From assembly GCF_006345805.1 (NCBI RefSeq), contig NC_043006.1, positions 65,472,001 through 65,536,000 on the forward strand: DNA of 64,000 nt. The letters are read 5' to 3'. Positions 12,929 through 62,169 of the stretch are shown piece after piece. The stretch comes from Octopus sinensis. Lineage: Eukaryota. Position 1 is the stretch's first letter. The number at the start of each line of letters is the position of its first letter. Position numbers and translations under genes: made by a program. The notes under the pieces were generated by a model. The model searched no databases. It saw nothing but the letters and a program-made list of their open reading frames with translations, and was not told where the DNA came from.

Positions 12929-12979
<51 letters not shown>

Positions 12980-15560: not shown

Positions 15561-16839
15561 CAACTCACTCTAATGATCGAGGACATTGATCCTTCTTCCC
15601 TACCAAGTTCCCTCACCACTCAATAGTTTCCTATTTCAATGATGTAATTGCTTATTTTTAGGATGACATTGTAGCATAGGTGTGATAGGTTGGATCTGGC
15701 CATTTGTAACATAAGATGGGTAGAATATTTGAGCTGAATATGGTTGGTTTAAATGCTAAAGGAAAAAGTCAAACTAACATGGGATGTTCAATACAGTTAG
15801 TCTGTTGCAGTGGTTTCCATCCTGGGGTCCACAAAGGTAGTACTGGGGATCCGTGAACTAAATTCAAAATTTCATATATATATATATGCACACACATAAG
15901 GGTACACATATTAAAAGGGGTCTGTAGGAAAACTCATTTAAATAAAAGGGTTTGGAACAACTGGCCTGTTGGTGTATTGGGTTGCATTCCAGTCATCCAC
16001 ATAAGTTGCTAGATATTACACAGATGGCAAGCAGCATTATTATTCTTTGACCCTTAAAATTTAAAGTCAAGGTTTTTTCCTTAATCAGGTCCTGTGTCAT
16101 ATACATTCTCTGCCTTCCCGCATCCCTCCCATAGCACTTAGAGATATTTCCCCCGATTTGCTATGTTCAACCCTTTTGCACAGTGTCCATATGGCTCTTG
16201 GGAGTCCATGTTAGGTTTTGTTGTTGGTTATACATGTACAATACACAAAATATTTTACCAATTTTTATGCAATTCCTAATAATATTTAACTCTCAAATAT
16301 ATAACATGATTTTGTTTTTAACATGGGGGTCCATCTGAGAAAAATTTTAAGTAAAATAGAAATCAAAGGGGTCCATAGGAAAAAAATGGTTGAGAAACAC
16401 TGCCTTAGCATTTAAAATTACCATATCCGGCCCAAATATTTCTACCTATTTTATGTTTAAACTAGTCAGATTCAGCCTTTCATACATATGCTACAGTGTC
16501 CATTTTAAAATTAACAATCACATCATTGGGATTTTAAAGCTATGAGATAATGTTTGAATAATTGAAAACAATGTGAACAAGAGCACTCAGAGAGTGCAAA
16601 CCTCTGCCAAGGCAACACCAACGTCCTCTCAATGATTAACCAGAGATAGGGTTCAACTAATCAACTAAAGTCTTCTCTGAAATATATCCGTCTGATAGAA
16701 ATAATTGTTGAATTTAAGATTTAAAATTAAATGTGCCAAAATGTAAATGAGTAAATTCTTTTCCAAAATTGCTTGTTTGTTTTGTTGAATTTTCTTTTTT
16801 AATTCCTATTAATGTATTTTTTTTTTTGGTCTATTCCAG

Positions 16840-20590: not shown

Positions 20591-21829
20591 TTAGTATTAT
20601 GATTTTTTTAATTCTATATCCCCCATCACCAGGTTTTGTGGTCTTGTAACTGTAGTGCTGTGGTTCTCAACCATTTTTTGCCTATGGACCCCTTTGGTTC
20701 ATATTTTACTCCGTAGATATTTGCTGTATATAAAAAAAATCTTACTGTATCTTAAATATTAAGAATTGTTTAAAAAAAATTAAAATACTGTATGCATTGT
20801 AGAATTATAGCCAATTTATTACACATAACATTTAACAAGAATATCTTATAAGGACCCTCTCTCTCTCTCACTCAATATTTCATCTCCCCCACCCCCTTTC
20901 TATTATTGTGCTGTGTTGTATGGTTTAGAAAGTAAGTGTCACAGTTGCTTTAGTTTGATGCCACGGCACTGGGTAAATACCTTCTATAATAGTCTTGGAC
21001 TAATCTTTGTTTTATGAATTAAATTGAGGAGATGGAAATAGTATGGAAATCCATCAGGTAGATTGTATCTTTTCTTGGATGATGGACTAAAATCATTACA
21101 TGAGTTTAACGGCCACATGCTTCTTGGTTACTTTTCCATGCCAAATTTTGGAAACTCTGTAAAACATCATGGGTTCTGCCCACTTCTTCCTTTGACCGTT
21201 TAGCATTTAAAAAACTGGCCATATCGAGCCAAATACTCTACCTGTTTTATGCTCAAAATAGTCAGATCTAGCTTGTTACACCAACCCTACAATATCATTC
21301 TAAAAATCAAGTTACCTCATAAAAATCTCAAAGCTACAGAATAATGAATGATTAATACAAAACAATGTGAATAAATAAGTATTGCACTTGACACCATAAT
21401 GTGAATGCTAATGGGTTAATTAAAACAAATTATAAAAATATGTTAGAAGCTATCATTGTTATTACCATGGCAAGTGTTGTTGTAGGTAGTTTTCATGATG
21501 TATCTTATGTTAAGCTGAGAAGTTCCATACAAAACTGTGCAAATTAGTTTCTCGGTGCTGCTGACACTGTTTTACTTATTTCCATCATGAAAATCAAAAA
21601 TTGCAATATCTCTAATTAAATAAAACTAAGATCTCGTGCCTATGTCAGATAGCTATGGTCTTGTTGTTGTTCTTGCTGCTGTTAAGATTTGACTTGTTTT
21701 GATTAATGGTATTATGGCACTATTTCTTGAATTACTTTTATATTCTAATGCACCTGTAAATTGGGTTCTGTGTATGTACATGTGTAGGAATGTGTATATG
21801 TGTATGAACATGTATGTACATATATACAT

Positions 21830-21864
<35 letters not shown>

Positions 21865-24480
21865 ATGTATATGTATATATGCATATATATGTTAAACGAT
21901 GATGATGATGATGATGATGATATATATATATATCTATAAGTATATTTATTTATATATATGTGTATATGTGTATGTATATGCATGTGTATATATATATATA
22001 AATGTATATGTGTGTGAGCATATACACATACCTCTATACCTATACACACACATGGGAATACAGCTAAAACAACTCAAAATATTTCTTTCAAAAATCTTTA
22101 AAAGATTTAAAATTATTTTTCTTAATAATAATATTGATTATGTATGTGTGTATATTATTATATATTATATATATATATATGTATATATGTGCATTATTAA
22201 CATACAAATGCATGCGCATACAGAGAGCTAGAAAAGTACACGGATATATATTTGTATACAAATTTCACACTTGTATATACAGACTTTTGTATGTATACAC
22301 ACAGATGTTTAGAGATACTTATGTGTACATATACATGCATTTATACAATTACATATATACACATACATATGCACACACACACATATTGATTGTTGAATGT
22401 TATTCTAGTGTACCTTTATTGTTTTAAAATCTGTACCTGGAATCTCGGTACAGTTCTTTTGATCTTTCATCAATTACTTTCATTGATGATGGGTTGTATT
22501 ATATATGAAGAAATAACCTGTATCTACCTTCAAAAGAAAATATCTTCATGTTTTTTTTCTTTCTTTTAATTTAAAATAAAATTATAAAAAAAGAAACCCA
22601 AAAATAAAGACATGAAATTTGGTTGGTGGTGACAAAATTATCTTGAGTGCTTTAAATAAAAAGTTACTTTTTAATTATTTTTTTGCATTAGATTTCTAAC
22701 TGCAAATTCACTAAGTCAGTTCTTACTCAAGTCAAAATCTCACCTTTGCAAGGTTCAGGCTGGCTGGTTGGGTGGATGGAACTCGCATTCATATCTTTTT
22801 AAATTCAACACTTTTTTACTAACATCTTTCTCATTCTCTCTCTCTCCCTGTTCATATTGTCTGTGAATCTACCTTTGTTTCCTTTTATACCTCTTTCTTA
22901 TAACATTTTAATGCTTCATTCTCTCTCTCTCTCTCTCTCACTCAATGTTCATCTCCCCCACCCCCTTTCTATTATTTGCTTTTCTGTTTTCAATTTTCTT
23001 GTCATCTCAGGAACAATTTTTTTCTGCTGTCACCTCATATATAAATTCCTCATCTACTAGAAATTAAAGACAGTCAGTGGCCGATACATGATGTGCAGAT
23101 CCTGGAGACCCCAAATTTCACAGTGCCCAGCCAAAATAAAATGAACACCTCTGATTGTGAGTGAGACCTGTTTTACTAAATTTCATTGCTTCATTCATTA
23201 CTTTTGTTCTCAAAAAAAAAAATAATAAAATAAAATAAAATAAAATAAAACCTTTCATATTTTCATTATCAGCATAACTATAATGTTTTGTGAAATATTG
23301 TCAGTTTTGTGTTGTTCCCTTCTAAATGACTGTTCTACATGTGCTTAGTTGGTCGAGTCTGGTAGGACCTGCTTCTCATTGTTTCATGTCTCTTATTTGA
23401 GGAATATATGAATGATGACGCCAACGATAATGGTTTGTCGAGTCAGTGCTGCCTTACGAGTCCTTCTCATCTTGCAACTGGGAAATGTCTGGTGCTGTTC
23501 CTGTCCATTGTGATTTGTTGCTTAATGTTGAGTAAATGTGTTGGGATGGGGGTGACATTTGTGCAACTATTACAGTAGATTCAATTGCCATGACCATCCA
23601 TGCTGACATGTATGGTGCTAGGCCACTTTTGGACTACTGAAGGAAGGCTGCATGAATTGCATGTTTTAGCTGCTCCTGCTGATGTAGAAGCATATCTCTG
23701 TCTGTATGTCTCCTTCTCTCTTTTAGAGTTTGTTCTTCTTAACCTCTTAAACATTTTTCCCAATTGTCACAGCTCTTTCCAATCTGTGTTCAAATCCTTC
23801 TGGATTTAACTTTACCTTTCATCATTTCGGAATCAATAAATAAAGTACCACTTGAGTACTAGAATTGATGGTATCAACTAAATCCCTCTCCTAGAAAATT
23901 ATTGATCTTATGCGTAAATTAGAAGCATCTGCTATCAGTGTTTTGGGGTAACTAAAAGCTTGTTTGTCAGTCATTAAAGACAACTTCATATTGGCCATTG
24001 TTTGGGTTAATTTGCAGGCCAATCAGGGCTGACTTCCCATTGCTACAAGAACCATTTAAAGAATTGCTGGTATCTATGTTAATATTCTTCTCTAGTTTTT
24101 TGAAAAAACACTATTTTTAGGTTATTGAAGGGTGGTTGGTGTTAGGAAGGGCATCCAGCCATAAAAACCGTGACAAAACAGACACAGATGTCTAGTGGAG
24201 TCTTCTGCTTGGCCAGCTCCTGTCAAACCATCCAAACCATGCCAGCATGGAAGGTGGATGTTAAACGATGTTGATGATGATGGTGATGCCATAAAGAGGC
24301 ACAACTTGCTATCATTGTAAACAATAAGAATAAACTATGTCTGAGAAAAATATGGGATTATGAGGGTTAAATTAACTGCTTTGTAGTACAGGGCTGACCT
24401 GAGGCTTAATAACAACCATCACACATTTAGAAGACTACACATCGTTTGTTCTATTAGCAATTAAAAACAAAGGCAATGAA

Positions 24481-24694
24481 CCCTTTAGCATTTAAACTGG
24501 CCATATCCAACCCAGATATTCTACCTGTTTTATATTCAAACCAGCTGAATTTGGCCTCTCACACCTACCCTACAATGTCATTCTAAAGAAAGCAATCACA
24601 TCATTGAGATCTTAAGGTTCTGAGATAATGCATGGTTAATTCAAACAATGCAAATAAATGTTAGATCTGACAGAGTCATCTGAATGCCAAAGGG
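24481..24694 (+). mobile_element. piggyBac-type MITE family C
   Basis: ccctttagcatt...gaatgccaaaggg followed by TTAA; left TSD reads TGAA. Confidence 0.85.
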
Positions 24695-24834
24695 TTAAAA
24701 ACAAATCTGTGCTTTTGAAGCTAAGTGGAATAATATATTCCTTACTCAAAATGATAGAAAGGGTATCTGGCTATAAAATTTTGCCTAAATCTCAATCCAA
24801 ATCTTAACAGTATGGGGAAAATACACATAAAAAA

Positions 24835-25230
24835 AATGAACATACATGGGCTCAGGTATTGTAAGAAGTTTGCTTCCCGACCACAGTAGGCGGGTTCTGT
24901 CCCACTGCATGACACCATGGGCAAGTGCCGTCTTCTATTGCCTCAGGCTGACTAATGCCTTGTGTGTGGATTTGGTAGATGGAAACTGAAAGAAGCCTGT
25001 TGTGTATGTGTGTGTATGGGCATTTTTTTTGTGTCTCTGTTAGTTCCCCCATTGTCGCTTGACAACTGGTGTTGGTGTGTTTACATCCCCATAGCTTAGC
25101 AGTTTGGTAAAAGAGACCGATAGTGTAAGTACCAGGTTTTAAAATAAGTAGTGGGGGGTGCGATTCATTCGACTAAATTGGCTTCAAAGCAGTGCCCCAG
25201 CATGGCCACAGTCTAATGACTGAAACAAGT
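24835..25230 (+). mobile_element. SINE family A (right arm type i)
   Basis: Complete left arm, (GT)-rich hinge and right arm. Confidence 0.85.
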
Positions 25231-25351
25231 GTATCAATTATAGTTTCTTGAATCTGACCTCACATTGCTCACTGTGCAGGGTGGGGATTCTCAAATGGTC
25301 TGCTGCAAAGGGTATCTAGATCCTCTATGGATTTTTGAAGGCATGATTTAA

Positions 25352-25802
25352 CCTTTTCGTTACTGTATTTATTTTGAGATGTTCTATGTTTCTTTCAATT
25401 ACTTTAAATATAACAAAGAATTTAGTAAAATAACTTAGTTGTCATTAAGCTAGTGTTAGGAACATAAATTGTAACTAAGGTTTGGTAGAAGATTTTAATA
25501 CAAAACTTATGAAAACGACATTTGTACTACAGAGACAGGGGTGGTTTCAGCTGGGTTGGTATTGAAAGGGTTAAATTAATCACTTGTTAACCCTTTTGTT
25601 ACCATATTTCTGTTGAGATGCTCTGTGTTTCTTTCAATTGATTTTAAATATAACAAAGAATGTAGTAAAAAAATTTAGTTATCATTCACCTAGTGTTAGG
25701 AACATAAATTGTAATTAAGGTTTGGTGGAAGATTTTAATTCAAAACTTATGAAAACAAGACATTTGTACTCAGAGCCAGAGGCAGTTTCTGCCAGGTTGG
25801 TA
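25352..25802 (+). mobile_element. Tandem dimer of MITE family D (second unit lacks its last bases)
   Basis: Units 25352-25570 and 25591-about 25802, junction TTAA-attaatcacttg-TTAA. Confidence 0.88.
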
Positions 25803-27470
25803 AGGATTTAGAAAAAAATCCATTGTAATACTTGAGCTTCTTGAAATCCGTGTTATTTTGTTATACAGAAGTGCTATTAGTAAGACAAGGTAAGCAATAG
25901 TTTTCTATATTTTTTGTGAATTTTAAGCATTAAAATATTGTTTGTTTATCCTTTTGACTTCTCGTGTGCATTGCACCTGTAATTATTTTATCTCTAGTAC
26001 CTCACTAAGCCGAAAAAGATTGAGAACCGCTTGAATAGGTTGACTAAAGACATGCCTGTAGGTTATTGAAGGGAACTTCTTGTTAGTATTTAGGCAACTG
26101 GAAATGGTTGTATGTCATTAAAGGGAACTTCAGTTGGTCACTGAAGACACAACAATTGGTCATTAAAGGGGATTACCCATTGATTATTGTATTGAACGGT
26201 AAAGTACATGTTTGTAGGTTATTGGAAGAAACTACAGTATTTGGGTAACTGGAGACATGCCTGTTGGTCATTAAAGAGGATTTCATATGGGTCATTTGGT
26301 TAGTTTGCAGGTAATCAAGATTGGCCTTACATTTGTACAGCTGCCAGCTCAAGGTTCAATGGGTTCTATGCCTGTAAATAAAAGTAGGGTAAGTGGGTTT
26401 AACATGAATGTAAAGGCTCATTAGGCTGGAGCTTATCTTAGTTTCCATGGAATGTGACTGACTGAGAGAGTATAATACTTCATCCTACTGAACAAGATGC
26501 CAGTCCATTGAAAGCAGACTGGAGCAATGTGAAATGATGTGTTTTGATCAAGAATGTAACATCCTGCTTGGTGTGGGAATCAAAACCTTGAACTTAACCA
26601 ATCACAAGTCTAATATCTGAACCCGTATGTCATGCATCTTCACAGGCCAGGCACCCTCGTTTGATGCAGTACTTTGCCTTAATCTCTTTGAAAAATACAA
26701 TTTTCCATGTTGAAATAAATAGGTGCCATAGAGAGGTATAGCTTACTATTGTAAGCAACAAAATTGTAAGCAACAATAATTGATGAGTGTTTCAAATGTG
26801 TTTAAGGTTACTGGGAGAGAGTGAATAATATCAGAAGTATTATAGGTGAATGTTACATATTGTTAAGATTAAAACAGAAAATATTCTGTAGTCTGACCTA
26901 AGAATTATGCAAAATGCTTTAGGTACCTGTATGTATAAATGTCCTTTCCCAGTATTTATAATTTCATGGTGTTAAACAGATATGAAATAAATCCCTCCCT
27001 GCCATAGGGTTCACATTGATATAGTTAGGTGCAAATAGTACCATGTGTTGGGAATGTGTGACTGGCACAGATAACTGATATAAAAGATGGTAACCTTTTC
27101 ATATTTTTACTTGCACTTTGACCTGATCTGGACAATTACAGATGATGATGACAATGACAATAACGACAATATCTTAGTTCAACTGCCATTACGATCATTA
27201 ACCATCACCCATTACTATTATCATTATTTTGATCTATACTTTCCCATACTTGCATGGACCAAATGAGGTATATTGAAGCAGATTTCTCTATGGACAGACA
27301 CCATTCCTACTGTCAACCCTCATCTATTTTCAAGAAAGATAATATTTTCCCATGGCCAGGCATATTTACTCAGAATATTGGAAATTACTGACATGCTTGT
27401 ATGAGAGTGACAAATGTTTACAACATTTACAACAATGTCAAGACAAGGAGACACACACATATACATACAT

Positions 27471-27524: not shown

Positions 27525-27895
27525 GCAAAGATTTATGGGGGAGGATGTCCATGTCGTGGGCTTGCTGATGCCTGATGAATCTGGTATGGGACAAACAGTC
27601 ATGACTGCAGAAGCTGAACAGAAAGGTAGGCTGATCAGCATTGGTTGTAGTGTCCTTTTTTCCATTTTCTCTTTTGTCTGCCAGGATAATCCTGTGGTTG
27701 TGTTCAAGTGAGACTGTTACCTGGAAGACACTAGGCTTCATGGTTAATGGCAAGAACAGGCTACTGGTGGTGAACAATGTGGCAGGTGCTGAGAGATTTC
27801 TTTAAGGAGTCCTTGTATTTCTTATTTGGTGCTCATCTACCTTGGTGACCTGAGGAGAGTTCACCATATGGCATGTTCTTGGGAAGTTGATCCTA
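27525..27895 (-). pseudogene. RTE (BovB-like) LINE 3' fragment
   Basis: LPKNMPYGELSSGHQGR*APNKKYKDSLKKSL..CHIVHHQ, plus a terminal FCSHDCLSHTRFIRHQQ zinc-knuckle-like segment. Confidence 0.8.
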
Positions 27896-28127
27896 ATTGT
27901 GGTAGGCTTCTTTCCGTTTCCATTTCCCAAATGTACTCACAAGACATTGGTCAACCCAGGGCTATTGCAGAAGACACTTGTCCAAGGTGTCACACAATGG
28001 GACTGAATCCCAAACCATGTGATTAGGAAGGAAACTTTAACCATACAGCCACTCCTACACCCATCATAAATAATATCTATGTTTTGAAAACAATATTTGA
28101 TTTATCCACTAAAAAATAGCAATTGTT

Positions 28128-30800: not shown

Positions 30801-31332
30801 GTTCACTTTTACAGTGTAACCGTTGAGATTTGTTGTTATTTGTGTGTTTCAGGTTATCTGTTGGGAGTTAAATATAAATCTAATATTCATTTCTATGGAC
30901 TCCGGTGTATTGCCAATATATGTAGGTGAGTGGCCACAATCGATTGTATTGACCTAAATATATGACTGGTACTTAAATGATTGAGTCTGAAATGATGAAA
31001 ATGTAACAGAGACAACATTAAATACTGAATACTCACATCTGCACAAGGTTACATAATTTGTTTTGTGTGGGCCATACAGTTGAATTAATCAACCCCAGCA
31101 CATTTACCTTGATTAAAGGACCCTTCCCTCCTTGTCATGTTTTATCAAAATGCAATCAGAATTCTTCAGTCATTTTGTTCAGATGTTTTCTTCATCTCAT
31201 TGCAACAGCTCTTGCTCTCTCTCTGTGAAACGGGAGATTTGCCAAGGCTCTGTGGCACTAATACATCATTGGGTGCTCTTGTTATCTGTGTTCTTTCCGG
31301 TTCCATTGAATGACTTGTTTGTTATTATTTAA

Positions 31333-31542
31333 CCATTTAGCATTCAGATTACTCTGTCAAATGTAATGCTTATTTATTCACAGTGGTTTGAATTAATCAT
31401 GCATCATCTTTTAGCTTTGAGTTTTCAATGATGTGATTGTTTATTTTTAGAATGATATAATGGAGAGACCAGATTTAGCTGGTTTGAACACAAAACAGGT
31501 TGAATATTTGGGCTGGATACAACCGGTTTAAATGCTAAAGGG
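31333..31542 (-). mobile_element. piggyBac-type MITE family C (about 210 bp)
   Basis: TTAA on both sides (31329-32, 31543-46), TIR CC(C/A)TTTAGCATT..AATGCTAAAGGG. Other copies at 24481-24694, 21196-21415, and partial at about 15675-15770, 16403-16578, 59765-59945. Confidence 0.85.
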
Positions 31543-31651
31543 TTAAACCCATATCAACACTGACTAGAGATCTATGAATGAAGTATATTTCATTCATGAC
31601 CATCCTTTTGTTTTCTCTGGCATAGTATATATTGGACTGCATCAAGTAATG

Positions 31652-31903
31652 CAGTGGTTCTCAAACATTTCTTTGCCTATGGGACCCTTAGACTTCTGTT
31701 TTACTCTTTTGGACCACCAAGGCCATTTGATGTTTAAACAAATCTTATTATTTCTATAATTAGATATTGTTAAGAATTGTATGATAAAATTGTTAAAATA
31801 TTTTGTGCATTGCTGAAATATAAACAATTTATTGCAGATAAATTTTAAGAGCAAAATCTTATATGGGCCCAAGGGCCATACAGATCCTGGTTGAGAACCA
31901 TCG
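31652..31903. mobile_element. Related Buster-type MITE without a nested insertion
   Basis: cagtggttctcaa..gttgagaaccatcg ends; duplicated right end 31904-31937. Partial relatives at 15808-15963, 16324-16402, 20658-20856, 39480-39578. Confidence 0.7.
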
Positions 31904-32744
31904 ATCTAGGGCCATACAGATCTCAGATGAGAACCATTGGTCTAGTATGAAAGCAAGTGTCCTTGTGATTTGGGTGTTGCACTACCAATAGTAAAATCGT
32001 AATTTCAATCCCTAGGCTGGCACTGCTTTGTGTTTTGGAATAAAGTACTTCATTTCATATCACTCTTTTCATTTAGGCTTGAATGGGTGGGTCACCCTGT
32101 GGTGGACTGGCATTCTATTCAGGTAGAATGTTGGCCTATCTGTCCAGCTAGCAGTGGTATCATTCGAAAGCTTCAAGAATGTGAGGACACACCTTGTGAC
32201 CAGCTGTGTATAGCAACATCTGATAGTCAGGTTGATACAGTGACAACATTTAATGTATCCATTTTCGAAATGGTACAGTGTGGTTTGAAGGAGATTTGTC
32301 TGCTGTTTGTCACAAGTCAAATGAACAAACAGAGGCTCCTCGTGAAAGACTTGTTTTGAAGATCATAAAGCCTTCTCAGTGTGAGTCGCAATACTCCTGC
32401 AAGTTGAGGCAGCATTTGCATTAATTGTTGATTGCAGTATTTCATTAAGAGGAAAATCTCTTCATTTGGTGCCTAAAATATTATAGAGGCATGGTATTTC
32501 TTACATCAACCAAACCGTCCTGGATGGGAGATGTTAAAGTCAGCTGCTTTTCAATCTGGATTCGGACCTTACTCTCTTTAAATCGAATGCTGTAAGGTAA
32601 TGATGTCCAACATTTTGTCTTTTTTTCATCTCCACTGGTTGACCACTAAATATTTTTTTCTTCATTTCCTTTCCTTTCTTTCTCTATTGTATGTCTTACA
32701 GTCCTTGTGTAAGAAGTTTTATAGCTTTTAACTTTTATCTTTCC

Positions 32745-33322: not shown

Positions 33323-33466
33323 TCTAGTATTTGACTGATACTTGTGACCCTCTCATAAGGGTGAAAGGCAAAGTTGATGTCAGTGGTATTTGAGTTCAAA
33401 GTACAAAGGACCAGAACTAAAACTGCAGAGCACTGTATGCTTTACTCTAATGATTTTGTCATATCT

Positions 33467-34008
33467 TACCAACCACATGGTTCCAGGTTCAGTCCTGCAC
33501 CTTGAGTAAGTGTCTTCTTCTATAACCTTAGGCCTGCCTAAGCCTTGTGAGTGGATTTGTTTGATGGAAACTGAAAGAAGCCTATCGTATATATATCATC
33601 ATCATCATTTAACGTCTGCTTTCCATGCTAGCATGGGTTGGATGATTTGACTGAGGGCTGGTGAACTAGATGGCTGCACCAGGCTTCAATCTTGATCTGG
33701 CAGAGTTTCTTCTGCTGGATGCCCTTCCTAATACCAACCACTCCAAGAGTGTTGTGGGTGCTTTTATGTGTCACCTGCACAGGGCCAGTCAGGCGGTACT
33801 GGAAACGACCTCACTCAAATCTTTTACACATGCCACCTGCACAGGTGCCAGTAAGGTGATGCTGGTAACGATCACGCTTGAATGGTGTCTTTTATGTGCC
33901 ACTGGCACGGAGGCCAGATAGCCGCTCTGGCAAGGATCACGCTTGGATGGTGCTCTTAATACCCTACTAGCACGGGGCTTGAGTGCCAGTAAGTCAACGC
34001 TGGTAATG

Positions 34009-37030: not shown

Positions 37031-37309
37031 AGTAAAAAAATAAAAGAATATATATATATTCACTTTGTATTTTCCCATGGTTTGTTTTGGTTCTATATTT
37101 GTGTTTAGTGCTCATCAGGTGTTCACAGGCATCGGAAGCGTTTTTACGTTAACATTAATAACAGTGAGAATGAATGCTCAATACTGCTTTGGTTGGTAAC
37201 CATTCTTTATTTGTAAGTTAACAAGGCTTCTAATGGTTTCATGTTGAGAGATTTCTCTCAACAATTATCAAGCCTGCCACAGGAAGGACATCTGGCAATC
37301 TGCCTCAGT

Positions 37310-37710
37310 AAACTCTGTTTGCCCCATGCTGTATGGGAGTGAGACATGGTGTCTGAGGGAGAGGGAGATGGCAATTTTGAGAGGAACTCAGAGAGCAATC
37401 GTGAGAAAAATGTGTGGGGTGAAGCCGTTTGATAAGAGGAGGACAGGATTTGATGGCAATGCTGGGGCTGGAGGAATTGCTTGAATTGAGTGAGGTGGGG
37501 TGGATATGTGTTGAGGAGGGATGAAGAGCATGTTCTGAGGAGAGTGATTGCTTTTGAGATAAATGGAGCATGAAAGCAAGTTGGACAAGGAAAAGGTGGA
37601 GGAGGAGATCAGGAGGGTTGGTTTGAAAAAGGAGGATGCCCAAAACTAGGCAAGATGATGTGAAGGCATTGAAGTAGATCTGGATTTAAAACATTGAATG
37701 ATGATGATGA
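37310..37710 (+). pseudogene. RTE LINE 3' fragment with (TGA)n tail
   Basis: PMLYGSETWCLREREMAILRGTQRAIVRKMCGVK..VLRRDEEHVLRRVIAFE..VEEEIRRVGLKKEDAQN. Confidence 0.8.
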
Positions 37711-38019: not shown

Positions 38020-38735
38020 GTGTTTTGTGTCTATATTAGTCCCCTGCTACCATCTGACATTTGGTGTTGGTATAACTTAGCAGTTTAGCAAAAGAGACTA
38101 GGCTTAAAAAACTAAGTAACGGGGTTGATTCATTCTACTAAAAACTCTTCAAGGCATTGCCTCAGCATGTCTGCAGTCCAATGATGGAAAGGAGTAAGAG
38201 ATAATAGATAACCACAATCACAGCAGTTATAATAACGATATCTATAATGATGTCAGCGATAACAACAGACTTCAAAATGTGAATTAGTAATTAAAACAAA
38301 ACCGGATATGTGTACTGTCTGTGTTTATAGTATTCACTTATATAGGCACAAGCGTGGCTTTGTGGTAAGAAGCTTGCTTCCTGGTCTTACGATTGTGGGT
38401 TCAGTCCCACTGTGTGACACCTTGGGCAAGTGTCTTCTACTATATGCTCAGGCTGACTAAATCCTTGTGAATGGATTTGGTAGATGGAAACTGAAAGAAC
38501 CCCCACTGTGTGTGTCTCTGTGTATGTGTGTGCATGTGTTTGTGTGTGTGTGTCCCACCACCACATGACAACTGGTGTTGGTGTGTTTATGTCTCTGTAA
38601 CTTAGCTGTTTGGCAAAAGAGACTGATATTGTAAGTAGCAAGTTTTAAAAAAATAGGCACTGGAGTTAATCCATTCAGCTAAAAATTCTTCAAGACTTTG
38701 CTCCAGCATGGCCACTGAAACAAATAAAAGATAAA
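37806..38735 (+). mobile_element. Two consecutive SINE family A copies (about 37806-38200 and 38350-38735)
   Basis: Both have left arm, microsatellite and right arm type i. Confidence 0.8.
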
Positions 38736-39593
38736 AGATGTAGTAGGGCAGCACTGAAGTAGTCACCTACATCACCCAGTAGTCGGAACTAAATTACACT
38801 GGGTTGATATTATATGTATGTACATTTAAAATGATGAGGGTGTGGCAGTGAATTGTAGTAAGAGGATGTTGAAAAAAAGTTAGTGAAAGAAAAGTGGAGA
38901 GAGTTAAAAAATGTTTAAGAAGCTTGGTATTAAGAGTCTCTCCTCTGTCCACTGTTAAAAGCAGCAGCAGCCGTAGCAACAACCACTTTGTATGTCTATG
39001 TTGACTATCTGTTGGAATGTTTGTTAAAAGAGTGTTACTGGGTTAAAACTTGTTAAATCTTGGTAACTGGTGTCCCGGATGGTTTTAGTAGAGCAGCAGT
39101 AGGTAGATTAAAAAAGAGAGTGGAGACAGACAGATAGATAGATAGATAGAGGGGGAGAGAGAACGAGAGAGAACGAGAGAGAGTGACAGACAGATAGGCA
39201 GATGGTGAGCAATAAAGGTGTGAACATGAATTTTACTTTGTTGCTGTTTCACCTTTGAGCAATTTAGTTCAACCCTGAGTCAGCAAACTTAGGATCAAAG
39301 GTGTTTAAACTATTATCCTTCTGCTTTTTGGATCCCAGAGACTTGATTGACCTGTGTGTCTGTCTGACTGTTACTCTTTAAGGTGGTAGGTTGTAATTTG
39401 AAGGGATTTTTGCTGTTGTTTCTTGCAGGTTGAGTAACCACATAAGGCACCCTTATTAGCTTGAATTTTAGTTTGGAGTTTGTAAAACATTTTGTGTGTT
39501 ATAGAAGTATAAATCAATTTATTGTGCAACAAAATTTTAACAACAAAATCTTATATGGACCCCAGTTGAGAACCACTGATGCAAACTCTAGAT

Positions 39594-40617
39594 CAGTGAT
39601 TCTCAACTGGGGAATCTCATATGGCACCTGAGGGTCCATATGAGATTTTGGGAGGGTCCACATAACAAAATAGTAAATTGGAGACCCACAATAGTATTCT
39701 AAGAGCTCCTGCTTTAGATGTATGTATTGCAAGAAACAGCTGGGTTTCTTTCTATAACATTTTACGTAGTGCCGCTTACACAAGTTAATGTGTGAAAAAA
39801 CAAAATAGGAATTTTGAACGAGATTTTTATAAAACTAGTTTTTAACCCATTTGTTACTATATTTATTTTGAGATGCTCTGCATTTCTTTCAATTAATTTT
39901 AAATATAACAAAGAATTTAGTAAAATAACTTATCATTAAGTTAGTGTTAGGAACATAAATTGTGACTAAGGTTTGACAGAAGATTTTAATTCAAAACTTA
40001 TGTAAACAAGACATTTGTACTCAGAGCCAGAGGCAGTTACAGTTGGGTCAGTATCAAAATGGTTAAATTATTCATTTGTTAACCCTTTTGTTACTATATT
40101 TCTGTTGAGATGCTCTGTGTTTCTTTCAATTGATTTTAAATATAACAAAGAATTTAGTAAAATAACTTAGTTATCATTAAGCTAGTGTTAGGAACATAAA
40201 TTGTAATTAAGGCTTTGTGAAAGATTTTAATTCAGAACTTACGAAAACAAGACATTTGTACTACAGAGCCAGAGCTGATTTCAGCTAGGTTGGTATTGAA
40301 AGGGTTAAATTAATCATTTGTTAACCCTTTTGTTACCATATTTCTGTTGAGATGTTCTGTGTTTCTTTCAATTGATTTTAAATATAACAAAGAACTTAGT
40401 AAAATAATTTAGTTATCATTAGTGTCAGGAACATATATTGTGACTCAGGTTTGGTGGAGGATTTTAATTAAAAATTTGTGAAAATAAGACTACAGAGCCA
40501 GAAGCGATTTCAGCCAGGTCGACAACAAAAGGGTTAAGCATAGAATGGCTAGTGGGGTCCACCAGGATAAAATAGTAATGAAAGGGGTCCACAGATAAAA
40601 ATGGTTGAGAATGCCTG
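39594..40617 (+). mobile_element. hAT (Buster-type) MITE hosting the family D trimer
   Basis: TIR cagtgattctcaac / gttgagaatgcctg. 8-bp TSD ctcTAgat (39586-93) / ctcTAggt (40618-25) with the central TA typical of Buster-family hATs. Confidence 0.8.
39846..40533 (+). mobile_element. Tandem trimer of piggyBac-type MITE family D
   Basis: Units 39846-40062, 40083-40304, 40325-40533, each CCCTTT(T)GTTAC..GTAT.GAAAGGG and bounded by TTAA. Spacers attattcatttg and attaatcatttg. Confidence 0.9.
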
Positions 40618-41166
40618 CTCTAGGTCATCCCTAAACAGTCAGACTTATAATGAAATATTCTCCAACTGTTACTATTCTCTCTTTTTGTTTCTCACAGAAT
40701 ACATTGTTCTGGATGTCTTTCTGTCCTTCCTTTTGTTTTAAGATGCTTAGTTCCCTAAACCCAGACTACATTTGAAAAAGGATTAGCAATGTCCATAGAC
40801 CCAGCGTTCAGTGATTGTGAACAAACAAGTGTTTATATTGAATACGAGTCACTCTTGTTGAGAAAATCTTTCAAGAATAGCTCACCTCGACACCCAAGTT
40901 ATTGTTGTTTTGACCCTTGTTCAGGTCAGACGTCCTCTTGCCAGCATAAGTGACCCAGTCCTGCAATAAATGTGGTCTTCGACTCTTCAAAGATCTGTTT
41001 GACTCAAGATAATGGATCTTTGAAACATAGTGATAAGGGTTTTTGCTATCACCATAACCCTTCAGAATATGCAGTATCTGTCTCTATTTCTTATCTTTTT
41101 TTACTTGGGTTTCCTAATTTAGTAATACATACACACACCATACGTGTGTATGTGTGCGTGTGTTTG

Positions 41167-42495: not shown

Positions 42496-42854
42496 CATTT
42501 GATTTGACACTTGAGTGGAATCCACTCTGTTACAAATACACCATCACATTTTACCTTGAGTGGAGTCTACTCTGTTGCAAGTACACTATCACTTGGCACT
42601 TTGAGTGGAGTTCACTCTGTTACAAATATGTCATCACTTGGCACCTTGAGTGGAGTTCACTCTGTTACAAATATGCCATAACTTGGCACCTTGAGTGGAG
42701 TTCACTCTGTTACAAATATGCCATCACTTGGCACCTTGAGTGGAGTTCACTCTGTTACAAATATGCCATCACTTGGCACCTTGAGTGGAGTTCACTCTGT
42801 TACAAATATGCCATCACTTGGCACCTTGAGTGGAGTTCACTCTGTTGCAAGTAT
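42496..42854. repeat. 45-bp minisatellite, 8 units, each with an internal palindrome
   Basis: Consensus catcacttggcaccttgagtggagttcactctgttacaaatatgc; central units near-identical, outer units diverged. Confidence 0.95.
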
Positions 42855-50463: not shown

Positions 50464-51060
50464 TACACTATTTATCATTATTATATATATATCATCATCA
50501 TCATCATCATTGTCTTTTAACATTCACTTTCCATGCTGGCATGGGTTGGCCGGTTTGACTGAGGGCTGGCAAGCCAGGATTCTGTACCAGGCTCCAATCT
50601 GATCTGGCAAGGTTTCTACAGCTGGGTACCCTTCCTAATGCCAACCACTCTGAAAGTGTAGTGGGTGCTTTTTATGTTCCACTGATGCGAGGGCCAGTCA
50701 GGCAGTACTGGCATCAGCTATGCTTGAATAGTGCTTTTTACGTACCACTGGCATGGGAGCTAGCCAGTCAGGCGGCACTGATATATATATATATATATAA
50801 ACATTACCATTTTACTTCCATCTTCCATGCTGATATGGGTTGGATGGTTTGACAGGGACCAAAGTACTTTATTAAACTCCACTGGATGCCCTTCCAATTA
50901 CCAACCAGTTTCCATAATGGAGTGGATGATTTTATGTAGCAACATCACTGGCGAAGTCTGCTTTGGAATGGTTTTCATGGCTGGATGCCATCCCTAATGC
51001 CAATCACTTCACAGAATGGACTGAGCGCATTTTATGTGGCAGCAGCACCAGTGAGGTCAG

Positions 51061-51800
51061 CTTTGGGACTCCACACAAGCAAAATAGTAAATTGGTGTCC
51101 CACAGTAGTTTATTTAGGGTCCATGAAAAAATTTACTTTAGATGTGTTTATTGCAAATAACAGCAAGATTTCTTTCTTTTGTATTTTGAATTGTTCAGCC
51201 TACACAAGTTAATGTGTGAAAATCAAAATATAAATTCTAAAAGAAGTATCTATAAAACTAATTTTTAATCCTTTCAATACTGAAACCACCTCTGGCTCTG
51301 TAGTACAAATGTCTTGTTCATAAGTTTTGAATTAAAATCTTCCAAGAAACCTTAGTCACAATTTATGTTCCTAACACTAGCTGAATGATAACTAAGTCAT
51401 TTTACTAAATTCTTTGTTTTATTTAAAATCAATTGAAAGAAACACGGAACATCTCAATAGAAATATGGTAACAAAAGGTTAAATAATTAATTTAACCCTT
51501 TTGATACCAACTCAGCTGAAGCCGCCTCTGGCTTTGTAGTACAAATATTTTGTTTTCATAAGTTTTGTATTAAAATTTTCCATCGAACTTTAGTCACAAT
51601 TTATGTTCCTAACACCAGCTTAATAATAACTAAATTATATTACTAAATTCTTTGTTATATTTAAAATTAATTGAAAGAAACACAGAGCATCTCGAAATAT
51701 ATATAGTAACAAAAGGATTAAACATTGAATGGCTATAGAGGTCCACCAGCATAAAGTAGTAGTGAAAGGGGTCAATTGGAAAAAAACATTTGAGAACCAA
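51061..51800 (+). mobile_element. 5'-truncated copy of the same Buster-type MITE, hosting the family D dimer
   Basis: Colinear with 39645-39845 and 40538-40617; ends tttgagaacca. Confidence 0.75.
51269..51717 (-). mobile_element. Tandem dimer of MITE family D
   Basis: Units 51269-51478 and 51496-51717, reverse complement of the 39846 units, with TTAA at each boundary. Confidence 0.9.
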
Positions 51801-52799
51801 TATGCTAAAGACTAGGTCAATAACTATCATATCAAAAATTTACTCTTAATAGCATGAGATATGGTAAGAAGTCACCCACATCAAACTAGTACCCAGAACT
51901 AAATTACTGTGGCCTGATATTAACATTGTCATCATAATCACTTCAAGGACCACTTTTCCACGCTTACATAAAGGTAGAATTTGTTGAGGCAGATTTTCTT
52001 TGGCTGGATGTCCTTCCTGTTTTCATACAAGGTAATATTTTCCCATGATCAGATGTTTTCACAGAAGATTGGAAATGAAGAATGTCATTTGCATGATGGT
52101 CGCACTTCTTTACAAGTATCACGTGATGTCAAGGCTCACACACACACACACACATATATCCATTTATCTATCCATTCATTCATGTTATGTAATGTGTGTC
52201 TGCCTTGCGAAACCATAGTCGTCGTCATTGCCAGTGTCCTGTAAATGGCGCTCATGAAATTGTAGTCGTGGCTGTTGCTGGTGTCATGTAAATGATACCT
52301 GTGCCAGTGGCATGTAAATGGCGCCCATTACACTCTTGGAGTGGTTGGTATTAGGATGTGCATCCAGCTAAAGAAACGATGCCAAATCAGACTGGAACCT
52401 GGTGTAGCTGTCTGGCTTACTAGTTCCAGTCAAACCAGCTAACCTATGCATGAAAAGCTGACATTACATGATGATGGTGACGATATATGTATCTATGTAT
52501 TTATGCACACATATGCAATGTGCTTCATTCAGTTTCTGTCTACCAAATCCATTCATAAGGCTTTGGTTGATTTGGGGCCCACAGTAGAAGACACTTGCCC
52601 GAGGTGTCACTCCATGGGATTGAAACTGAAATCATGTAGTTGGGTAGAAAACTTATTATTATACACCTGTGCCATGTTCATTAAATATGGTGGGGCCTTG
52701 TATTGTAGGAAGGAGACCTTGAAAATGTGTTAGTAAAAGAAAAAAGTTTGGGTTTGGAAAGGTTTGAGAAGCACTATTGTAACTAAAGTCTAGTTAATT

Positions 52800-53450: not shown

Positions 53451-54377
53451 CTGTTTATGGATTGATTTTCTTTCTTCTTCATAATAGATTGAGCAGCTGG
53501 TGTCTGTATAGTCTAGATTCAGAGGAGACATACGATAATTCAAGTGGAGCGGTCTCCTTGTTAATAATTATGAACTTCTTAAATAGTAGTATTTCAGCTA
53601 AATTTCAGTGTTGGAGGAGAATGTCTGTTAAGAGGTGGGGATGTTGAAACAGTTAAACGTGCTGCTGCAGTCAGCTCTGATCCAATCAGATCAGATATAG
53701 TCTAGTTATGACTATCTTATGCTTTTTTTGTTTTTGTTTTTTTTCTTTCTGGATAGTATATCTAGGATTACATTATCAAAATGTGCTGCAGTAGATGCAA
53801 GATAGAGCTAGTGTGAGCAAGACAAGATCTTGTTGAAGTATTATATGGTGTAGAGACTACATTTATAGTAGTAGTAGTTGTTGTTGATGAGCCTCACGTC
53901 GTCCCTGATCAAGTAGGCTCATGATCAAAGAACATTCAATTCATATTCCTTGTCTCCTGCAACTGTATACACTCTACTACTCTACTCCATTATCCGGTGT
54001 GATCTTTTTGTTTTCAAATAGTTTGGTGTAATTTGAGGAAGATTTGCTGCTTATCACAGGTCAAATGACTGTGGAACTTTGGTTGGAAATTTTGATGCGC
54101 ACGTTGACACCAAACTCTGTCTGTCCTAATCATCATCCCTTTGCTCATCCTCTTTGCGATCATTTGCTGTTTTCATTTGTTTCTCGTTTGTAAGTGTGCA
54201 CTTAAGGGTTTTGCTAAGTTGGGAGGGAGAAAAAATGTGTCACTGTCATTATCATTAACTCCTCATAGAGCTGATTGCCTGGTTTCCATGGCATACAAGT
54301 AACTGAGATCACAGGAATTCCCCCAGAACGGGAGGCCTAGTCTGTCACTGGGTTACTCATTTACAGTTGACTGGACT

Positions 54378-55007
54378 GGTGGTGATCTAAGTATACAATA
54401 GCAGTATGGGTGTGTGATTGTAGTATAGGATGGTTAGAATAAAGGCTGGTCATAGGTTGTGTGTGGTGGTGGTCTGGATATATTGAGAGAGACATGCACA
54501 AATCAGAATAGTGGAGAAAAGCTGGACTTGAAAATCAATCAACATGATGATGGTAGTGGCAGTGGTTGATTGCTGTAGTGTTGTTTGACACTTGTACATG
54601 ACAGCTAGAGTGGAGGTCACTGATGGTGGTGATATAAGTATACAATAGCAGTATGGATGTGTGATTGTAGTATAGGTTGGTTAGAATAAAGGCTGGTCAT
54701 AGGTTGTGTGTGGTGGTGGTCTGGATATGTTGAGGGAGACATGCACAAATCAGAATAGTGGAGAAAAGAGGGACTTGAAAATCAATCAATATGATGATGG
54801 TAGTGGTGGTGGCAGTGGTTGATTGCTGTAGTGTTGTTTGACGCTTGTACATGACAGCTAGAGTGGAGGTCACTGATGGTGGTGATATGAGTATACAATA
54901 GCAGTATGGATGTGTGATTGTAGTATAGGCTGGTTAGAATAAAGGTTGGTCACTGGGTGTGTGGTAGTGGTTTGGATATGTTGAGGGGGGAATGCACAAA
55001 TCAGAAT
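54378..55007. repeat. Tandem repeat, about 250-bp unit, 2.5 copies
   Basis: Units start at 54378, 54625 and 54878 (247 and 253 bp), highly similar. Confidence 0.95.
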
Positions 55008-55534
55008 GGTGATATATGGTCTCTAGAACAGAGCTAGGTCATAGTGTTATGAACATGTGTTGGTAGTGTATATTAGTTAGAGTTGAGATAAGCCATGGTA
55101 GTCTGGATATGTGATGATAGTTGAGGGAAGCTAAACCATAGATTAATCAGAGTTGTAGAGAGGTGTGATGGTGGCTCGAGAGAGATAGATCATAGTGGTG
55201 TGGACACATGATAAAAATTAATGATAAGAACAGACTAATTAATTGCAGGAGTCTATCAATAACTGCATATAAATTGTTGATTAACATGTCGTTGGTAAAT
55301 GCAACACACTGATGTAATTTAGTCTTTATTGCTGTGTGTTGTGTCAGTCTGTTTCTCCTTCCGTTTTCTCCCTTGCTTCTTTGTTCTATAAAAGCTAGTC
55401 TGTAGCATCAGAGTTCCACATTGATTAGTTTGAACTCTGCCATCTTGGGTCTCAATTCAGTAATTATTTCATTAAGGCTCCAGTTTCTGGAAAAATGCTT
55501 AACAAGGTACATTTGAACTTAGGAAGCATGTTTG

Positions 55535-55678: not shown

Positions 55679-56746
55679 GACAATAAAATGGTTTAGTCTT
55701 ACTGCATAGCACCTTGGGCAAGTGTTTTTTACTATAGCTCCAGACTGACCAATGCCTTGTGAGAATTTGATCAATGGAAACAGTGGGGAAGCCCTTTATG
55801 TGTGTGTGTGTGTGTGTGTGTGTGTTTGTGAGACTGTGTCATTGTATCTGTGTTTGTCTCTCCTCCTACCACTTGACTTGATTGAAATTGGTTTGTTTAT
55901 GTCCTCTGTAACTTAGCAACTTGACAAAAGAGGCTGAGAATATAGAAATACGTACTGTGGTCAATTTGTTCAACATGATTACTTTATTATCAATTTATAA
56001 CAACTAAAACAATACATATTGGTTTCAGCAATTTCAGGGGAGGGAGTAAGTCAATTTCATTGACCCCAGTGCTCAACTGGTACTTATTTTCTCAAACTTG
56101 AAAGTGTGAAAGGCACAGTTGACCTTGGTGGAATTTGAACTCAGAACGTAAAGTGCCAAAAGAAATCCTGCTCAGCATTTTCTCCAGTGCCAGTGACATT
56201 TCTGCCAGGTTAATAATCCTTTCTACAATAGTCACAAGGCCTGAAATGTTTGGGGAGGGGTAAGTTGATCACATCGACCCCAGTGTTTCACTGGTACTTA
56301 TTTTATCAACCCTGAAAGGATGAATGATAAAGTCAACCTTGGTGGAATTTGAACTTAGACTGTGAAGACAGATGAAACACCGCTAAGCATTTTCCCCAGC
56401 ATGCTACTGATTCTGCCAGCTCACCACCTTCAGTTTAATAACAACATTGGTTTCCTATTTACACATTAAGTAAGAAATTTTGAAGGAAGGGTCAAGTTAA
56501 TAACATTGACCCCAGTACTTGACTGATACTTTATTGACCTTAGAGAGAGAAAAGGCAAAATTTATCTTGGTAGGATTTGAACCTGGAATGTAAAAAGAAA
56601 AACTAAATACTGCACAGTATTTTTTTAAATCCTAATGATTTTACCAATCCTCCATCACTAATAAAGATGTTGATGATGATGATAATGATGCTACTGTTGA
56701 TGATGATAAATATGATGATGGTTTCTAATATAATAATAAAAATAAG

Positions 56747-59974: not shown

Positions 59975-60560
59975 AAAGTTAGGCATAAGAGGCATCAGAT
60001 GTGGTGTGCAAGAGAGACGACTGTATTGGTATGGTCATGTGATGCATATGGATGAAGGCAACTGTGTAACGACGTGCCAAATTCTAACTGTGGAGAGAAC
60101 CTGTGGTAGAGTTAGACCCAGGATGACATGAAACAAAGTGGTGAAGCATGATCTTTGAACTTTTGGCCTCACAGAGGCAGTGACTAGTGACCAAGACCTT
60201 TGGCAATATGCTGTGCTAGAGAAGTCCTGCCTAGCCAAATGAAATTGTAGTTGTGGTTGATGTTGGTGTTACATAACTAGCACCCGTGTTGGTGGCACGT
60301 AAAAAGCACCTTTCGAGCATTGGGCCTCATGGAGGCAAAGTGACTGCGCTCTTTTCAAGTGTTCGGCCTCATGAAGGCAATAACTGAGACCTTTGGCATT
60401 ATTGTCATGCTTGAGAAGAAGACCCATCAAGCTGAGCAAACTTGCAGTTGTGGCAGATACTCTCGGAGTGGTTGGCGTTAGGAAGGGCATCCTGCCATAG
60501 AAACCATGCCAAATCAGACTAGTGCAGCCTTCCAGCCCTGGTCGAACTGTCCAACCAATG
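59975..60560 (+). pseudogene. RTE LINE 3' end with 3' UTR; likely source of the many short 3' tails in the window
   Basis: LGIRGIRCGVQERRLYWYGHVMHMDEGNCV..CGRVRPRMT*NKVVKHDL, followed by the gagtggttggcgttaggaagggcatcc UTR also seen in truncated copies at about 7740-8040, 11690-11890, 24120-24285, 41800-41985, 50490-50780, 52230-52480. Confidence 0.85.
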
Positions 60561-61141
60561 AATGCTAAAGCATCAATCAACTATCCCTGCCTCCCCACTT
60601 CAGGTCTTGTTCTTATCTTAGAAATATTATTATTATTATTATTATTAAGGTAGCACGCTGGCAGAATTGTAAATGTGTTGAGTAAAATGCTTAATGGTAT
60701 TTCATCCTATCTTTACATTATGAGTTCAGACTCCACCAAAGTCCACTAGGATTGATGTAATTAACTTATCCCTTCCTCCAAAATTGCTACCCTTGTGCTA
60801 AAATTTGAAACCATTATTATTATTATTATTAAGGTGGTGAGCTGGCAGAATCATTAACACACCAGGCTTAGTGGTATTTTGTCCATCTCTACATTCTGGG
60901 TTCAAATTCTGCCAAGGTTGACTTTACATTTATCCTTTTTGTGTTGATTAATTAAGTACTTGTGAAAAACTGGGGTTGATGTAATTGACTAGTCTCTCCC
61001 ACCAAAATTTCATGCCTTGTTCTTTTAGTAATGAAAATTATTATTATTGTTATTTCCTTCAAGGTTAACTTTACTTTTCATCCTTTTGGATAAAATGAGT
61101 AGTCTCTCAAAATTTCATGCCTTGTGACTATAATAGAAAGG

Positions 61142-61310: not shown

Positions 61311-62169
61311 GTGAGTAGACGCAAACATTTTATAATTTACTTTTTCTTTATATGTCTCAAATTCCGATCCTTCTTTGACTTTTGATGTGTTGCTTCCTAC
61401 CAATTTATGTTCAAAATCTCTTCAAAGAATTTTGTCGTTGATTATTTGGGGATCTGTTATGCTGTTTAGTAGCATTTTGGCAAGGATTGCAAAATTGTTG
61501 CATTTGAACTTAGGTTGTCTTGTGGTGAGGTATTCTATATATGTGGTAATCAACAGTAGTTCCAAACTATGTAAATGGTACTTTATTCTGGAATTTGGAA
61601 GCTGCTTAGCCTTTTGGACCTGTCACTCAGACCATCCCTGATTCAACGATATACACTCCTGTTTTAAAGTTATCTAAATTAATACTTTCTTTAAAATATT
61701 CAAGTGAATTTATGTCCCAGACACCAACTTAATAACGACAAATGATGCAGAAACATTTTTTGTTAGTGACCAATTTGCAGTTTTGAGTGACAAAAATTTT
61801 GACCCCGTTATTGCAATTAAATGTTTAAGTGAAGTTAATAGCCTTTGTGTGTTTCTGAATGTCCAACTCATGTCTGCCATGCTGTAATTACTAAATTATT
61901 CATTATTTTCAAGATTAATTGGAAAAACAGTAGTGTATTTTGACAAAAGTTTGTCAAAGTAAAAGTTAAAGATGAAATAAATTAAACAATATTAGTAAAA
62001 TGTGGTTGATTGAATCTATCACTGTGTTACATTATGTAAGGGCAAAGACTAACATTTTCACTCAACAGAAAGTTTTGATGTCTCCACTTTACTGATGTAC
62101 ATACATGCAATGATATTATAGTGTGATAAAACATTGACAAAGAATAATTGTTTGACAGTTAGGGTTTTT

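Follow-up and report, generated by a model that had tools for sequence, protein, structure and literature searches.

Tandem arrays of a putative piggyBac-type MITE at the same TTAA of two copies of a hAT-type MITE in Octopus sinensis

Tandem arrays and MITEs at the locus

The window analysed here, a stretch of 64,000 nucleotides of Octopus sinensis contig NC_043006.1 (positions 65,472,001 to 65,536,000; assembly GCF_006345805.1), has a GC content of 37%, is dense in microsatellites and contains no convincing coding sequence. Rfam and tRNA scans of the 64-kb window produced no matches, and ten candidate ORF fragments, mariner-like and RT-like ones among them, likewise had none in Pfam. The fragments that fall below the Pfam threshold include a decayed mariner-like sequence, 'FFSDEKIF' (12292-12573, minus strand), and an RT-like fragment corresponding to the C-terminal part of a LINE RT (37248-37481, plus strand) that is 69% identical to an uncharacterised protein of Octopus bimaculoides. 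One short repeat, a probable SINE, occurs very frequently and in many cases beside dinucleotide microsatellites (translations 'LLSVSIYQIHSQGIGQPRAIAEDTCPRCH'; for example, 2102-2401, 12860-13108, 27793-28023, 33383-33595, 38390-38644 and 52443-52730, as well as 25150-25230, in the far left flank of array C described below).

The main subject of this analysis is a repeat, denoted D, for which BLAST and a profile search built from the units identified seven copies in the window, arranged in three arrays: three forward units in array A, two reverse units in array B and two forward units in array C. The unit is about 230 bp long and has the layout TTAA-CCCTTT…AAAGGG-TTAA; together with a 12-bp linker, it forms a 242-bp repeat, the period at which TRF detects 2.7 copies in array A. 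In the consensus of the units, the start reads TTAA-CCCTTTTGTTAC and the end GTATTGAAAGGG-TTAA, the two ends being complementary at about 10 of the first 14 positions. TTAA flanks arrays A and B on both sides and array C on the left only.

39842-40537, plus strand: array A, three D units
39842-40066, plus strand: D unit A1, starting TTAA-CCCATTTG and ending TGG-TTAA; duplicated target TTAA on its left at 39842-45
40067-40078, plus strand: A1/A2 linker, ATTATTCATTTG, 12 bp, homologous to the linkers of B and C but dissimilar to the neighbouring host sequence
40079-40308, plus strand: D unit A2
40309-40320, plus strand: A2/A3 linker, ATTAATCATTTG
40321-40537, plus strand: D unit A3, with internal deletions of 5 bp and 8 bp and the end AAAGGG-TTAA; right target TTAA at 40534-37
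51265-51721, minus strand: array B, two D units
51265-51482, minus strand: D unit B2, the second of the array, reverse-complemented; left target TTAA at 51265-68
51483-51491, minus strand: linker in B, 9 bp, ATTAATTAT on the minus strand
51492-51721, minus strand: D unit B1, the first of the array, reverse-complemented; right target TTAA at 51718-21
25348 to about 25811, plus strand: array C, two D units
25348-25574, plus strand: D unit C1, starting TTAA-CCTTTTCG
25575-25586, plus strand: linker in C, ATTAATCACTTG
25587-25811, plus strand: D unit C2, with a degraded 3' terminus, alignable to 25802 and without an intact GGGTTAA

The linkers are 12 bp long in arrays A and C and are cut to 9 bp in array B. 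One linker (ATTAATCATTTG or a variant of it) is found at four of the four inter-unit junctions, at three loci, and is unlike either flank of the host MITE H1 described below. At both outer termini of array B (51265-51274 and 51712-51721), TTAA-TCC… / …GGA-TTAA replaces CCC/GGG. Two independent origins of this mirrored substitution are unlikely, and it may be the mark of a variant of the source array or of coupled ends. A possible fourth, degenerate D-like element at about 61607-61968 on the minus strand was left out (profile E=0.0016; alignment z=3.7, barely over the best shuffle); this trace has 5' similarity (TTAAC…TTTAGTAA) and flanks with TIR-like CAGTGAT…AATCAAC motifs. Another weak D-like trace lies at 56125-56216 on the plus strand (profile E=0.03). 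Two tandem arrays unrelated to D are located at 42510-42854 (45-bp unit, 7.7 copies, 92% matches) and 54377-55011 (247-bp unit, 2.6 copies, 92% matches). An exact-pattern scan of metagenome and prokaryotic genome contigs with a 20-mer of D gave 0 matches, and a protein search with a stop-free 54-aa peptide spanning the D unit junction yielded no candidate.

The hallmark of piggyBac is TTAA together with TIRs that start with 5'-CC[C/T]T (PMC2872659). Kolobok, the other TTAA-duplicating superfamily, has AG/RR termini beside TTAA (PMC6004289), and the assignment of D to Kolobok was rejected, its ends being CCC/GGG rather than AG/RR. Because D combines TTAA duplication and CCCT termini with the lack of AG/RR ends, it is best read, judging from these terminal features, as a piggyBac-type non-autonomous element. 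No transposase for D was found in the window, either in the ORF survey or in the Pfam search with the ten candidate ORF fragments. Recently active piggyBac families have been reported in Octopus vulgaris (PMC13282606). The window also contains a second piggyBac-type MITE family, unrelated to D and about 220 bp long, with the ends TTAA-CCCTTTAGCATT… / …AAAGGG-TTAA; its two solo copies (24477-24698, plus strand, and 31329-31546, minus strand) are about 82% identical and show that elements of the TTAA-CCCTTT kind are present in this genome. Neither of these two copies lies within an H-type MITE, one of them being located 106 bp from the hAT MITE at 31652.

Arrays A and B are each embedded in a copy of a MITE that we denote H1. 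H1-A without the insert comprises 329 bp (39594-39841 plus 40538-40617) and, with the array, 1,024 bp, and has no coding capacity. Its TIRs (CAGTGATTCTCAAC / CAGGCATTCTCAAC) match at 12 of 14 positions, subterminal GGGTCCA motifs are repeated, and the element is bounded by an 8-bp target-site duplication (TSD) with seven of eight positions identical, the calculated chance of a match at least this good being about 4e-4. The H1 TIR motif occurs 11 times in the window, against an expectation of 1.2. H1-B, oriented like H1-A, can be aligned to it along about 200 bp to the left of the insert and about 76 bp to the right; it lacks the left ~55 bp, TIR included, so that its TSD cannot be read. An H1 profile search of the window detected no copies beyond these two, and an exact-pattern scan of metagenome contigs with a 22-mer of H1 gave 0 matches.

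39586-39593, no strand assigned: left TSD of H1-A, CTCTAGAT, seven of eight positions identical to 40618-40625
39594-39841, plus strand: H1-A left arm, with the TIR CAGTGATTCTCAAC and GGGTCCA subterminal motifs
40538-40617, plus strand: H1-A right arm, with the end GGTTGAGAATGCCTG (TIR)
40618-40625, no strand assigned: right TSD of H1-A, CTCTAGGT
51062-51264, plus strand: H1-B left arm, 5'-truncated, without a TIR, adjoining another repeat family
51722-51798, plus strand: H1-B right arm

The terminal features support the anatomy of a hAT MITE for H1; such elements are small, with an 8-bp TSD and short TIRs of about 10-25 bp that begin with CAG/TAG. In the Buster/Charlie clade of hAT, the TSD consensus is nnnTAnnn (nTCTAGAn in Charlie); the single TSD available, CTCTAGAT, fits the Charlie consensus and also the Ac-type nTnnnnAn. 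An abundant interspersed repeat (50500-51062, 11720-11773, 24125-24334, 33670-33918 and 60272-60580; translations '…DALPNANHFTE…' and '…FYGWMPFLTPT…') adjoins the left end of H1-B with its copy at 50500-51062, apparently in place of that end.

The junctions of array A read tataaaactagttt-TTAA(39842-45)-CCCATTTG ... AAAGGG-TTAA(40534-37)-gcatagaatggcta, and those of array B read tataaaactaattt-TTAA(51265-68)-TCCTTTCAATAC ... AAAAGGA-TTAA(51718-21)-acattgaatggcta. Both arrays are bounded directly by duplicated TTAAs and occupy the homologous TTAA in the two H1 copies, in opposite orientations. A preliminary description of this DNA had reported the same TTAA of a hAT MITE as filled at 39842 (three D units, forward) and at 51265 (two D units, reverse), and the junctions are as transcribed there. 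The insertion TTAA is located about 80 bp from the right end of H1, in the context TTTTTAA(G/A)CAT.

A further MITE family, H2, has its ends in common with H1 and a different middle, and none of its four copies in the window carries D.

31652-31903, minus strand: H2-family MITE, homologous TTAA (31734-31737) unoccupied
16239-16402, plus strand: H2-family MITE, unoccupied
20658-20857, minus strand: H2-family MITE, unoccupied; the site lacks TTAA
39483-39578, plus strand: H2-family 3' fragment, 15 bp upstream of H1-A

In the MITE at 31652-31903, the homologous TTAA is present, single and empty, with acatcaaatggc coming after it on the minus strand, in agreement with the empty site described previously. 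For this MITE, a clear 8-bp TSD was not detected; its right end lies in a 36-bp tandem of 2.1 copies (31872-31945), yielding two candidate TIR ends. Between the last base of the H2 fragment, 39578 (…GTTGAGAACCACTG), and the first base of H1-A, 39594, lie 15 bp, and the end-to-end pair forms a 53-bp near-palindrome (39560-39612).

Array C, too, had been thought to sit between Buster-like ends, at a different position. Its flanks are the following.

25277-25347, no strand assigned: left flank of array C, with the TIR-like motif CAGGGTGGGGATTCTCAAA
25812-26033, no strand assigned: right flank of array C, with the TIR-like end GATTGAGAACCGCTTG

When these flanks were compared with a profile of the H right arms, only TIR-like tips matched, at 25285-95 on the minus strand (E=52) and at 26013-31 on the plus strand (E=7.2). 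The two matches are in the correct inverted arrangement, with a joint chance of about 0.002, a rough estimate from match density. No TSD was found around the flanks of array C. Global alignment of the flank interior with the H arms gave z<=1.2 (compared with 3.4-13.9 for true members), local alignment gave z of about 1.5, with a lone match at z=3.1 that is an AT-rich artefact, and BLAST matched the flanks only to the unrelated abundant repeat at 25150-25230. A Buster-like host MITE for array C is at most a weak candidate, with a pair of short inverted TIR-like matches, an unalignable interior and no TSD. The placement of C at the homologous TTAA (short arm of 71 nt versus 80-82 nt) was dropped, having found no support in the flank tests. 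If the host of C were real, all three arrays would reside in MITEs of this TIR type, which together account for about 3% of the window. The insertion site of C has no similarity to the H1 target, so that any extended target motif would not be obligatory.

Relative ages and dispersal of the arrays

The arms of H1-A and H1-B, which are about 77% identical, differ at 63 of 269 positions (K2P 0.284±0.039; 30 transversions), compared with 49 of 442 positions for arrays A and B (K2P 0.122±0.018; 13 transversions). The hosts have thus diverged more than twice as far as the arrays, the ratio being about four when transversions alone are counted (two-proportion test on the differences, z ~4.4). Array C is at K2P 0.110 from A and 0.123 from B, so that the three arrays are about equidistant. 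The host mismatches are spread evenly along a collinear alignment, and misalignment therefore does not explain the gap between host and array divergence. No conversion-like identity tracts were detected among the arrays, the longest common run being 58 bp versus about 27 bp expected; hence there is no sign that the arrays were rejuvenated by conversion.

BLAST detected no homology between loci A and B beyond the MITE ends. The non-homologous flanks, together with the TSD that H1-A has of its own, exclude a segmental duplication of the two loci; likewise, the scenario raised in the preliminary description, in which one locus was duplicated locally and then inverted by chance, is not upheld, given this lack of homology outside the MITE ends. 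The simplest history suggested by these sequences is that the H1 copies are older than the D arrays, with two old H1 insertions and a much later burst of D arrays, an argument that assumes equal neutral rates and no homogenisation for arrays located within 26 kb of each other, where ectopic conversion is most plausible.

In-place amplification of an inserted monomer would give spacers derived from the local flanks, so that the presence of the same linker at three loci implies that the arrays arrived as arrays. On their outer sides, arrays A and B terminate exactly at a TIR and a TTAA. Furthermore, the first units of all three arrays have a common 5' signature, at alignment columns 31 and 33 and partly at column 61, which the downstream units lack: the first units read TATTTATTTTGAG or TATATATTTCGAG, plus A at column 61 in A1 and B1, and the downstream units read TATTTCTGTTGAG or TATTTCTATTGAG, plus G at column 61. 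The second units are separated by K2P of 0.084-0.100 across arrays, as against 0.13-0.15 to their own neighbours; A2 and A3 (0.139) are not mutual nearest relatives, so that a recent local duplication did not give rise to the trimer. The positional signature rests on two to three sites, and a conflicting 3' signature is common to C2 and A1, so that strict positional orthology of the units is only partly supported. The signature in C2 and A1 suggests unequal exchange or the excision of sub-arrays from longer sources. Judging by the linkers, ends and unit signatures, the D arrays appear to have dispersed as arrays and not to have grown in place from monomers.

Explanations for the shared insertion site

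The window contains 439 TTAAs, two of them in each H1 copy; on the two strands combined, there are about 40 TTTTTAA sites. If the TTAA were chosen at random, two of three arrays would fall on the homologous TTAA of the only two H1 copies with an estimated p of ~7e-5. Sites A and B both read TTTTTAA(G/A), and piggyBac is known to prefer a T-rich 5' flank; if only TTTTTAA sites are eligible, the estimate for the same double hit becomes p ~4e-3. Given that random choice of TTAA fails to explain the coincidence, the transposase that mobilises D probably selects its site by more than TTAA, and some selectivity of D-array insertion beyond TTAA is likely, an inference drawn from two informative loci, with both H1 copies in the window filled.

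On balance, we favour independent insertions of D arrays at the same site of H1 copies that had already diverged. According to this scenario, D would be a non-autonomous element of the piggyBac superfamily, the mobile form of which is a short head-to-tail array. Each D unit would be a complete MITE of about 230 bp, with the fixed 12-bp linker joining the units, and the array would most likely have originated by double insertion into a pair of TTAAs spaced 12 bp apart or by tandem duplication across them. We infer that the whole array would then have been cut and pasted as one piece by its outermost ends, presumably by a piggyBac-type transposase. H1 would be an older hAT-type (Charlie/Buster-like) MITE, the copies of which diverged before the arrival of D, and D arrays would have entered the same TTAA of each copy independently, duplicating the TTAA, in random orientation. 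The putative site preference, which may extend genome-wide, could be based on an extended sequence, on local DNA structure, or on a protein or chromatin mark on the MITE family. More specifically, but doubtfully, the transposase of the D arrays might be a piggyBac-family enzyme with sequence- or structure-directed targeting of one TTAA in a hAT MITE family, that is, a 'transposon-on-transposon' specialist.

The preliminary description had considered repeated insertion and inversion within a composite side by side; the divergence of hosts versus inserts and the equidistance of array C point to two independent integrations at the same TTAA, and the composite is disfavoured. We regard it as unlikely that a single ancestral composite, consisting of H1 arms and array, was spread by the hAT transposase, with the array flipped in place in one lineage either by piggyBac-type excision followed by re-entry into the restored TTAA or by recombination in the 10-bp inverted ends (TTAACCCTTT). 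An in-place flip would leave exactly the observed junctions; H1-A retains both TIRs and the TSD, the 1,024-bp unit being movable in principle by hAT transposase; and the window has no empty H1 copy, the same TTAA being occupied in both, for which targeting would instead need to be very efficient. However, a composite predicts equal divergence of host arms and arrays, in conflict with the excess in the arms described above, and array C, outside H1, is as near to A and B as A is to B. The patchy identity that would be expected from conversion is absent, and the recombination route has to rely on inverted ends of only 10 bp, a repeat too short for ordinary homologous recombination.

That no special targeting was involved also seems improbable. 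Under this explanation, the arrays hopped locally within a 26-kb neighbourhood, the TTAA of H1 is a good generic piggyBac site, and the pattern reflects coincidence and post hoc selection. The three arrays within 26 kb are equally diverged, suggesting a single burst of local hopping, the TTTTTAA(G/A) sequence of both sites resembles the T-rich flank preference of piggyBac, and array C occupies an unrelated site; yet, the double hit is infrequent even among the ~40 TTTTTAA sites, and the other piggyBac-type family has both of its solo copies outside H MITEs. Ectopic gene conversion via the H1 arms, carrying the array from one H1 copy to the other, would account for the identical insertion point in copies located 11 kb apart on one chromosome but is highly improbable, because conversion via the arms would keep the orientation relative to them and is excluded by the opposite orientations of A and B, and the arms are only ~77% identical, with no identity tracts reaching into them.

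Relation to known systems and implications

Site-preferring piggyBac elements, tandem arrays of MITEs and nested MITEs are all already known, and the locus described here varies on these themes. By analogy, the closest known case to D would be Pokey and mPok of Daphnia, which insert into one of the more than 30 TTAAs of the rDNA unit (in 28S), with a target that extends beyond TTAA, and prefer similar extended sequences elsewhere; 23% of the mPok copies are in tandem (PMC3849761). Like D, these elements are of the piggyBac type, reuse one TTAA of a multicopy sequence despite the presence of many others and form tandem MITEs. However, their target is the 28S rRNA gene, whereas that of D is another transposon; the Pokey/mPok tandems share a single TTAA, whereas two TTAAs with 12 bp between them lie between D units, which appear to move as a block; and the preference of Pokey has been shown genome-wide, compared with n=2 for D.

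The CMITEs of Acropora are full-size piggyBac-like MITEs with CC[C/T]T ends and TTAA that form head-to-tail arrays, some with a conserved gap, and CMITE-IN is a TTAA-bounded composite element that is itself mobile (PMC2872659). These arrays resemble those of D in consisting of full-size piggyBac-type MITEs arranged head to tail, with conserved sequence between some of the units, but the coral arrays are attributed to in-place slippage, whereas for D, one linker at three loci and flush outer TTAAs argue for dispersal as arrays. No recurrent host element is reported for CMITEs (PMC2872659), in contrast to D arrays A and B, which both reside in H1.

In the P element and hobo, insertion-site preference leads to head-to-tail dimers that can expand into arrays (PMC5932611). 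Dimer formation via site preference is a plausible model for the origin of the D dimer. The P element and hobo dimers, however, involve autonomous Drosophila elements, whereas D is non-autonomous, and their junctions hold one TSD, whereas D junctions hold two TTAAs and a 12-bp spacer, which would imply neighbouring targets or a duplication that included flanking sequence. Jiang & Wessler (2001, in Plant Cell) reportedly found that plant MITEs are preferentially nested in other MITEs. The nested plant MITEs (Tourist/Stowaway) differ from D in belonging to other superfamilies, with TAA/TA targets, and in preferring AT-rich MITE DNA generally rather than one defined site in both orientations. For Stowaway, recurrent insertions at the same site are reported (PMC1925063).

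Should a genome-wide preference fail to materialise, the locus would be a case of ordinary TE nesting in which the same site was hit twice by coincidence. If the preference is real, D would represent a second natural lineage that chooses one TTAA in a dispersed, harmless repeat and would show how such specificity evolves. PiggyBac is a main tool of genome engineering, limited by the fact that it has no target specificity beyond TTAA. The use of what may be thousands of neutral MITE copies as landing pads that accept multi-unit arrays in either orientation would then amount to a 'safe-harbour' strategy. MITE arrays that are apparently mobile as arrays would also provide a direct route from a transposon to dispersed mini-satellite seeds.
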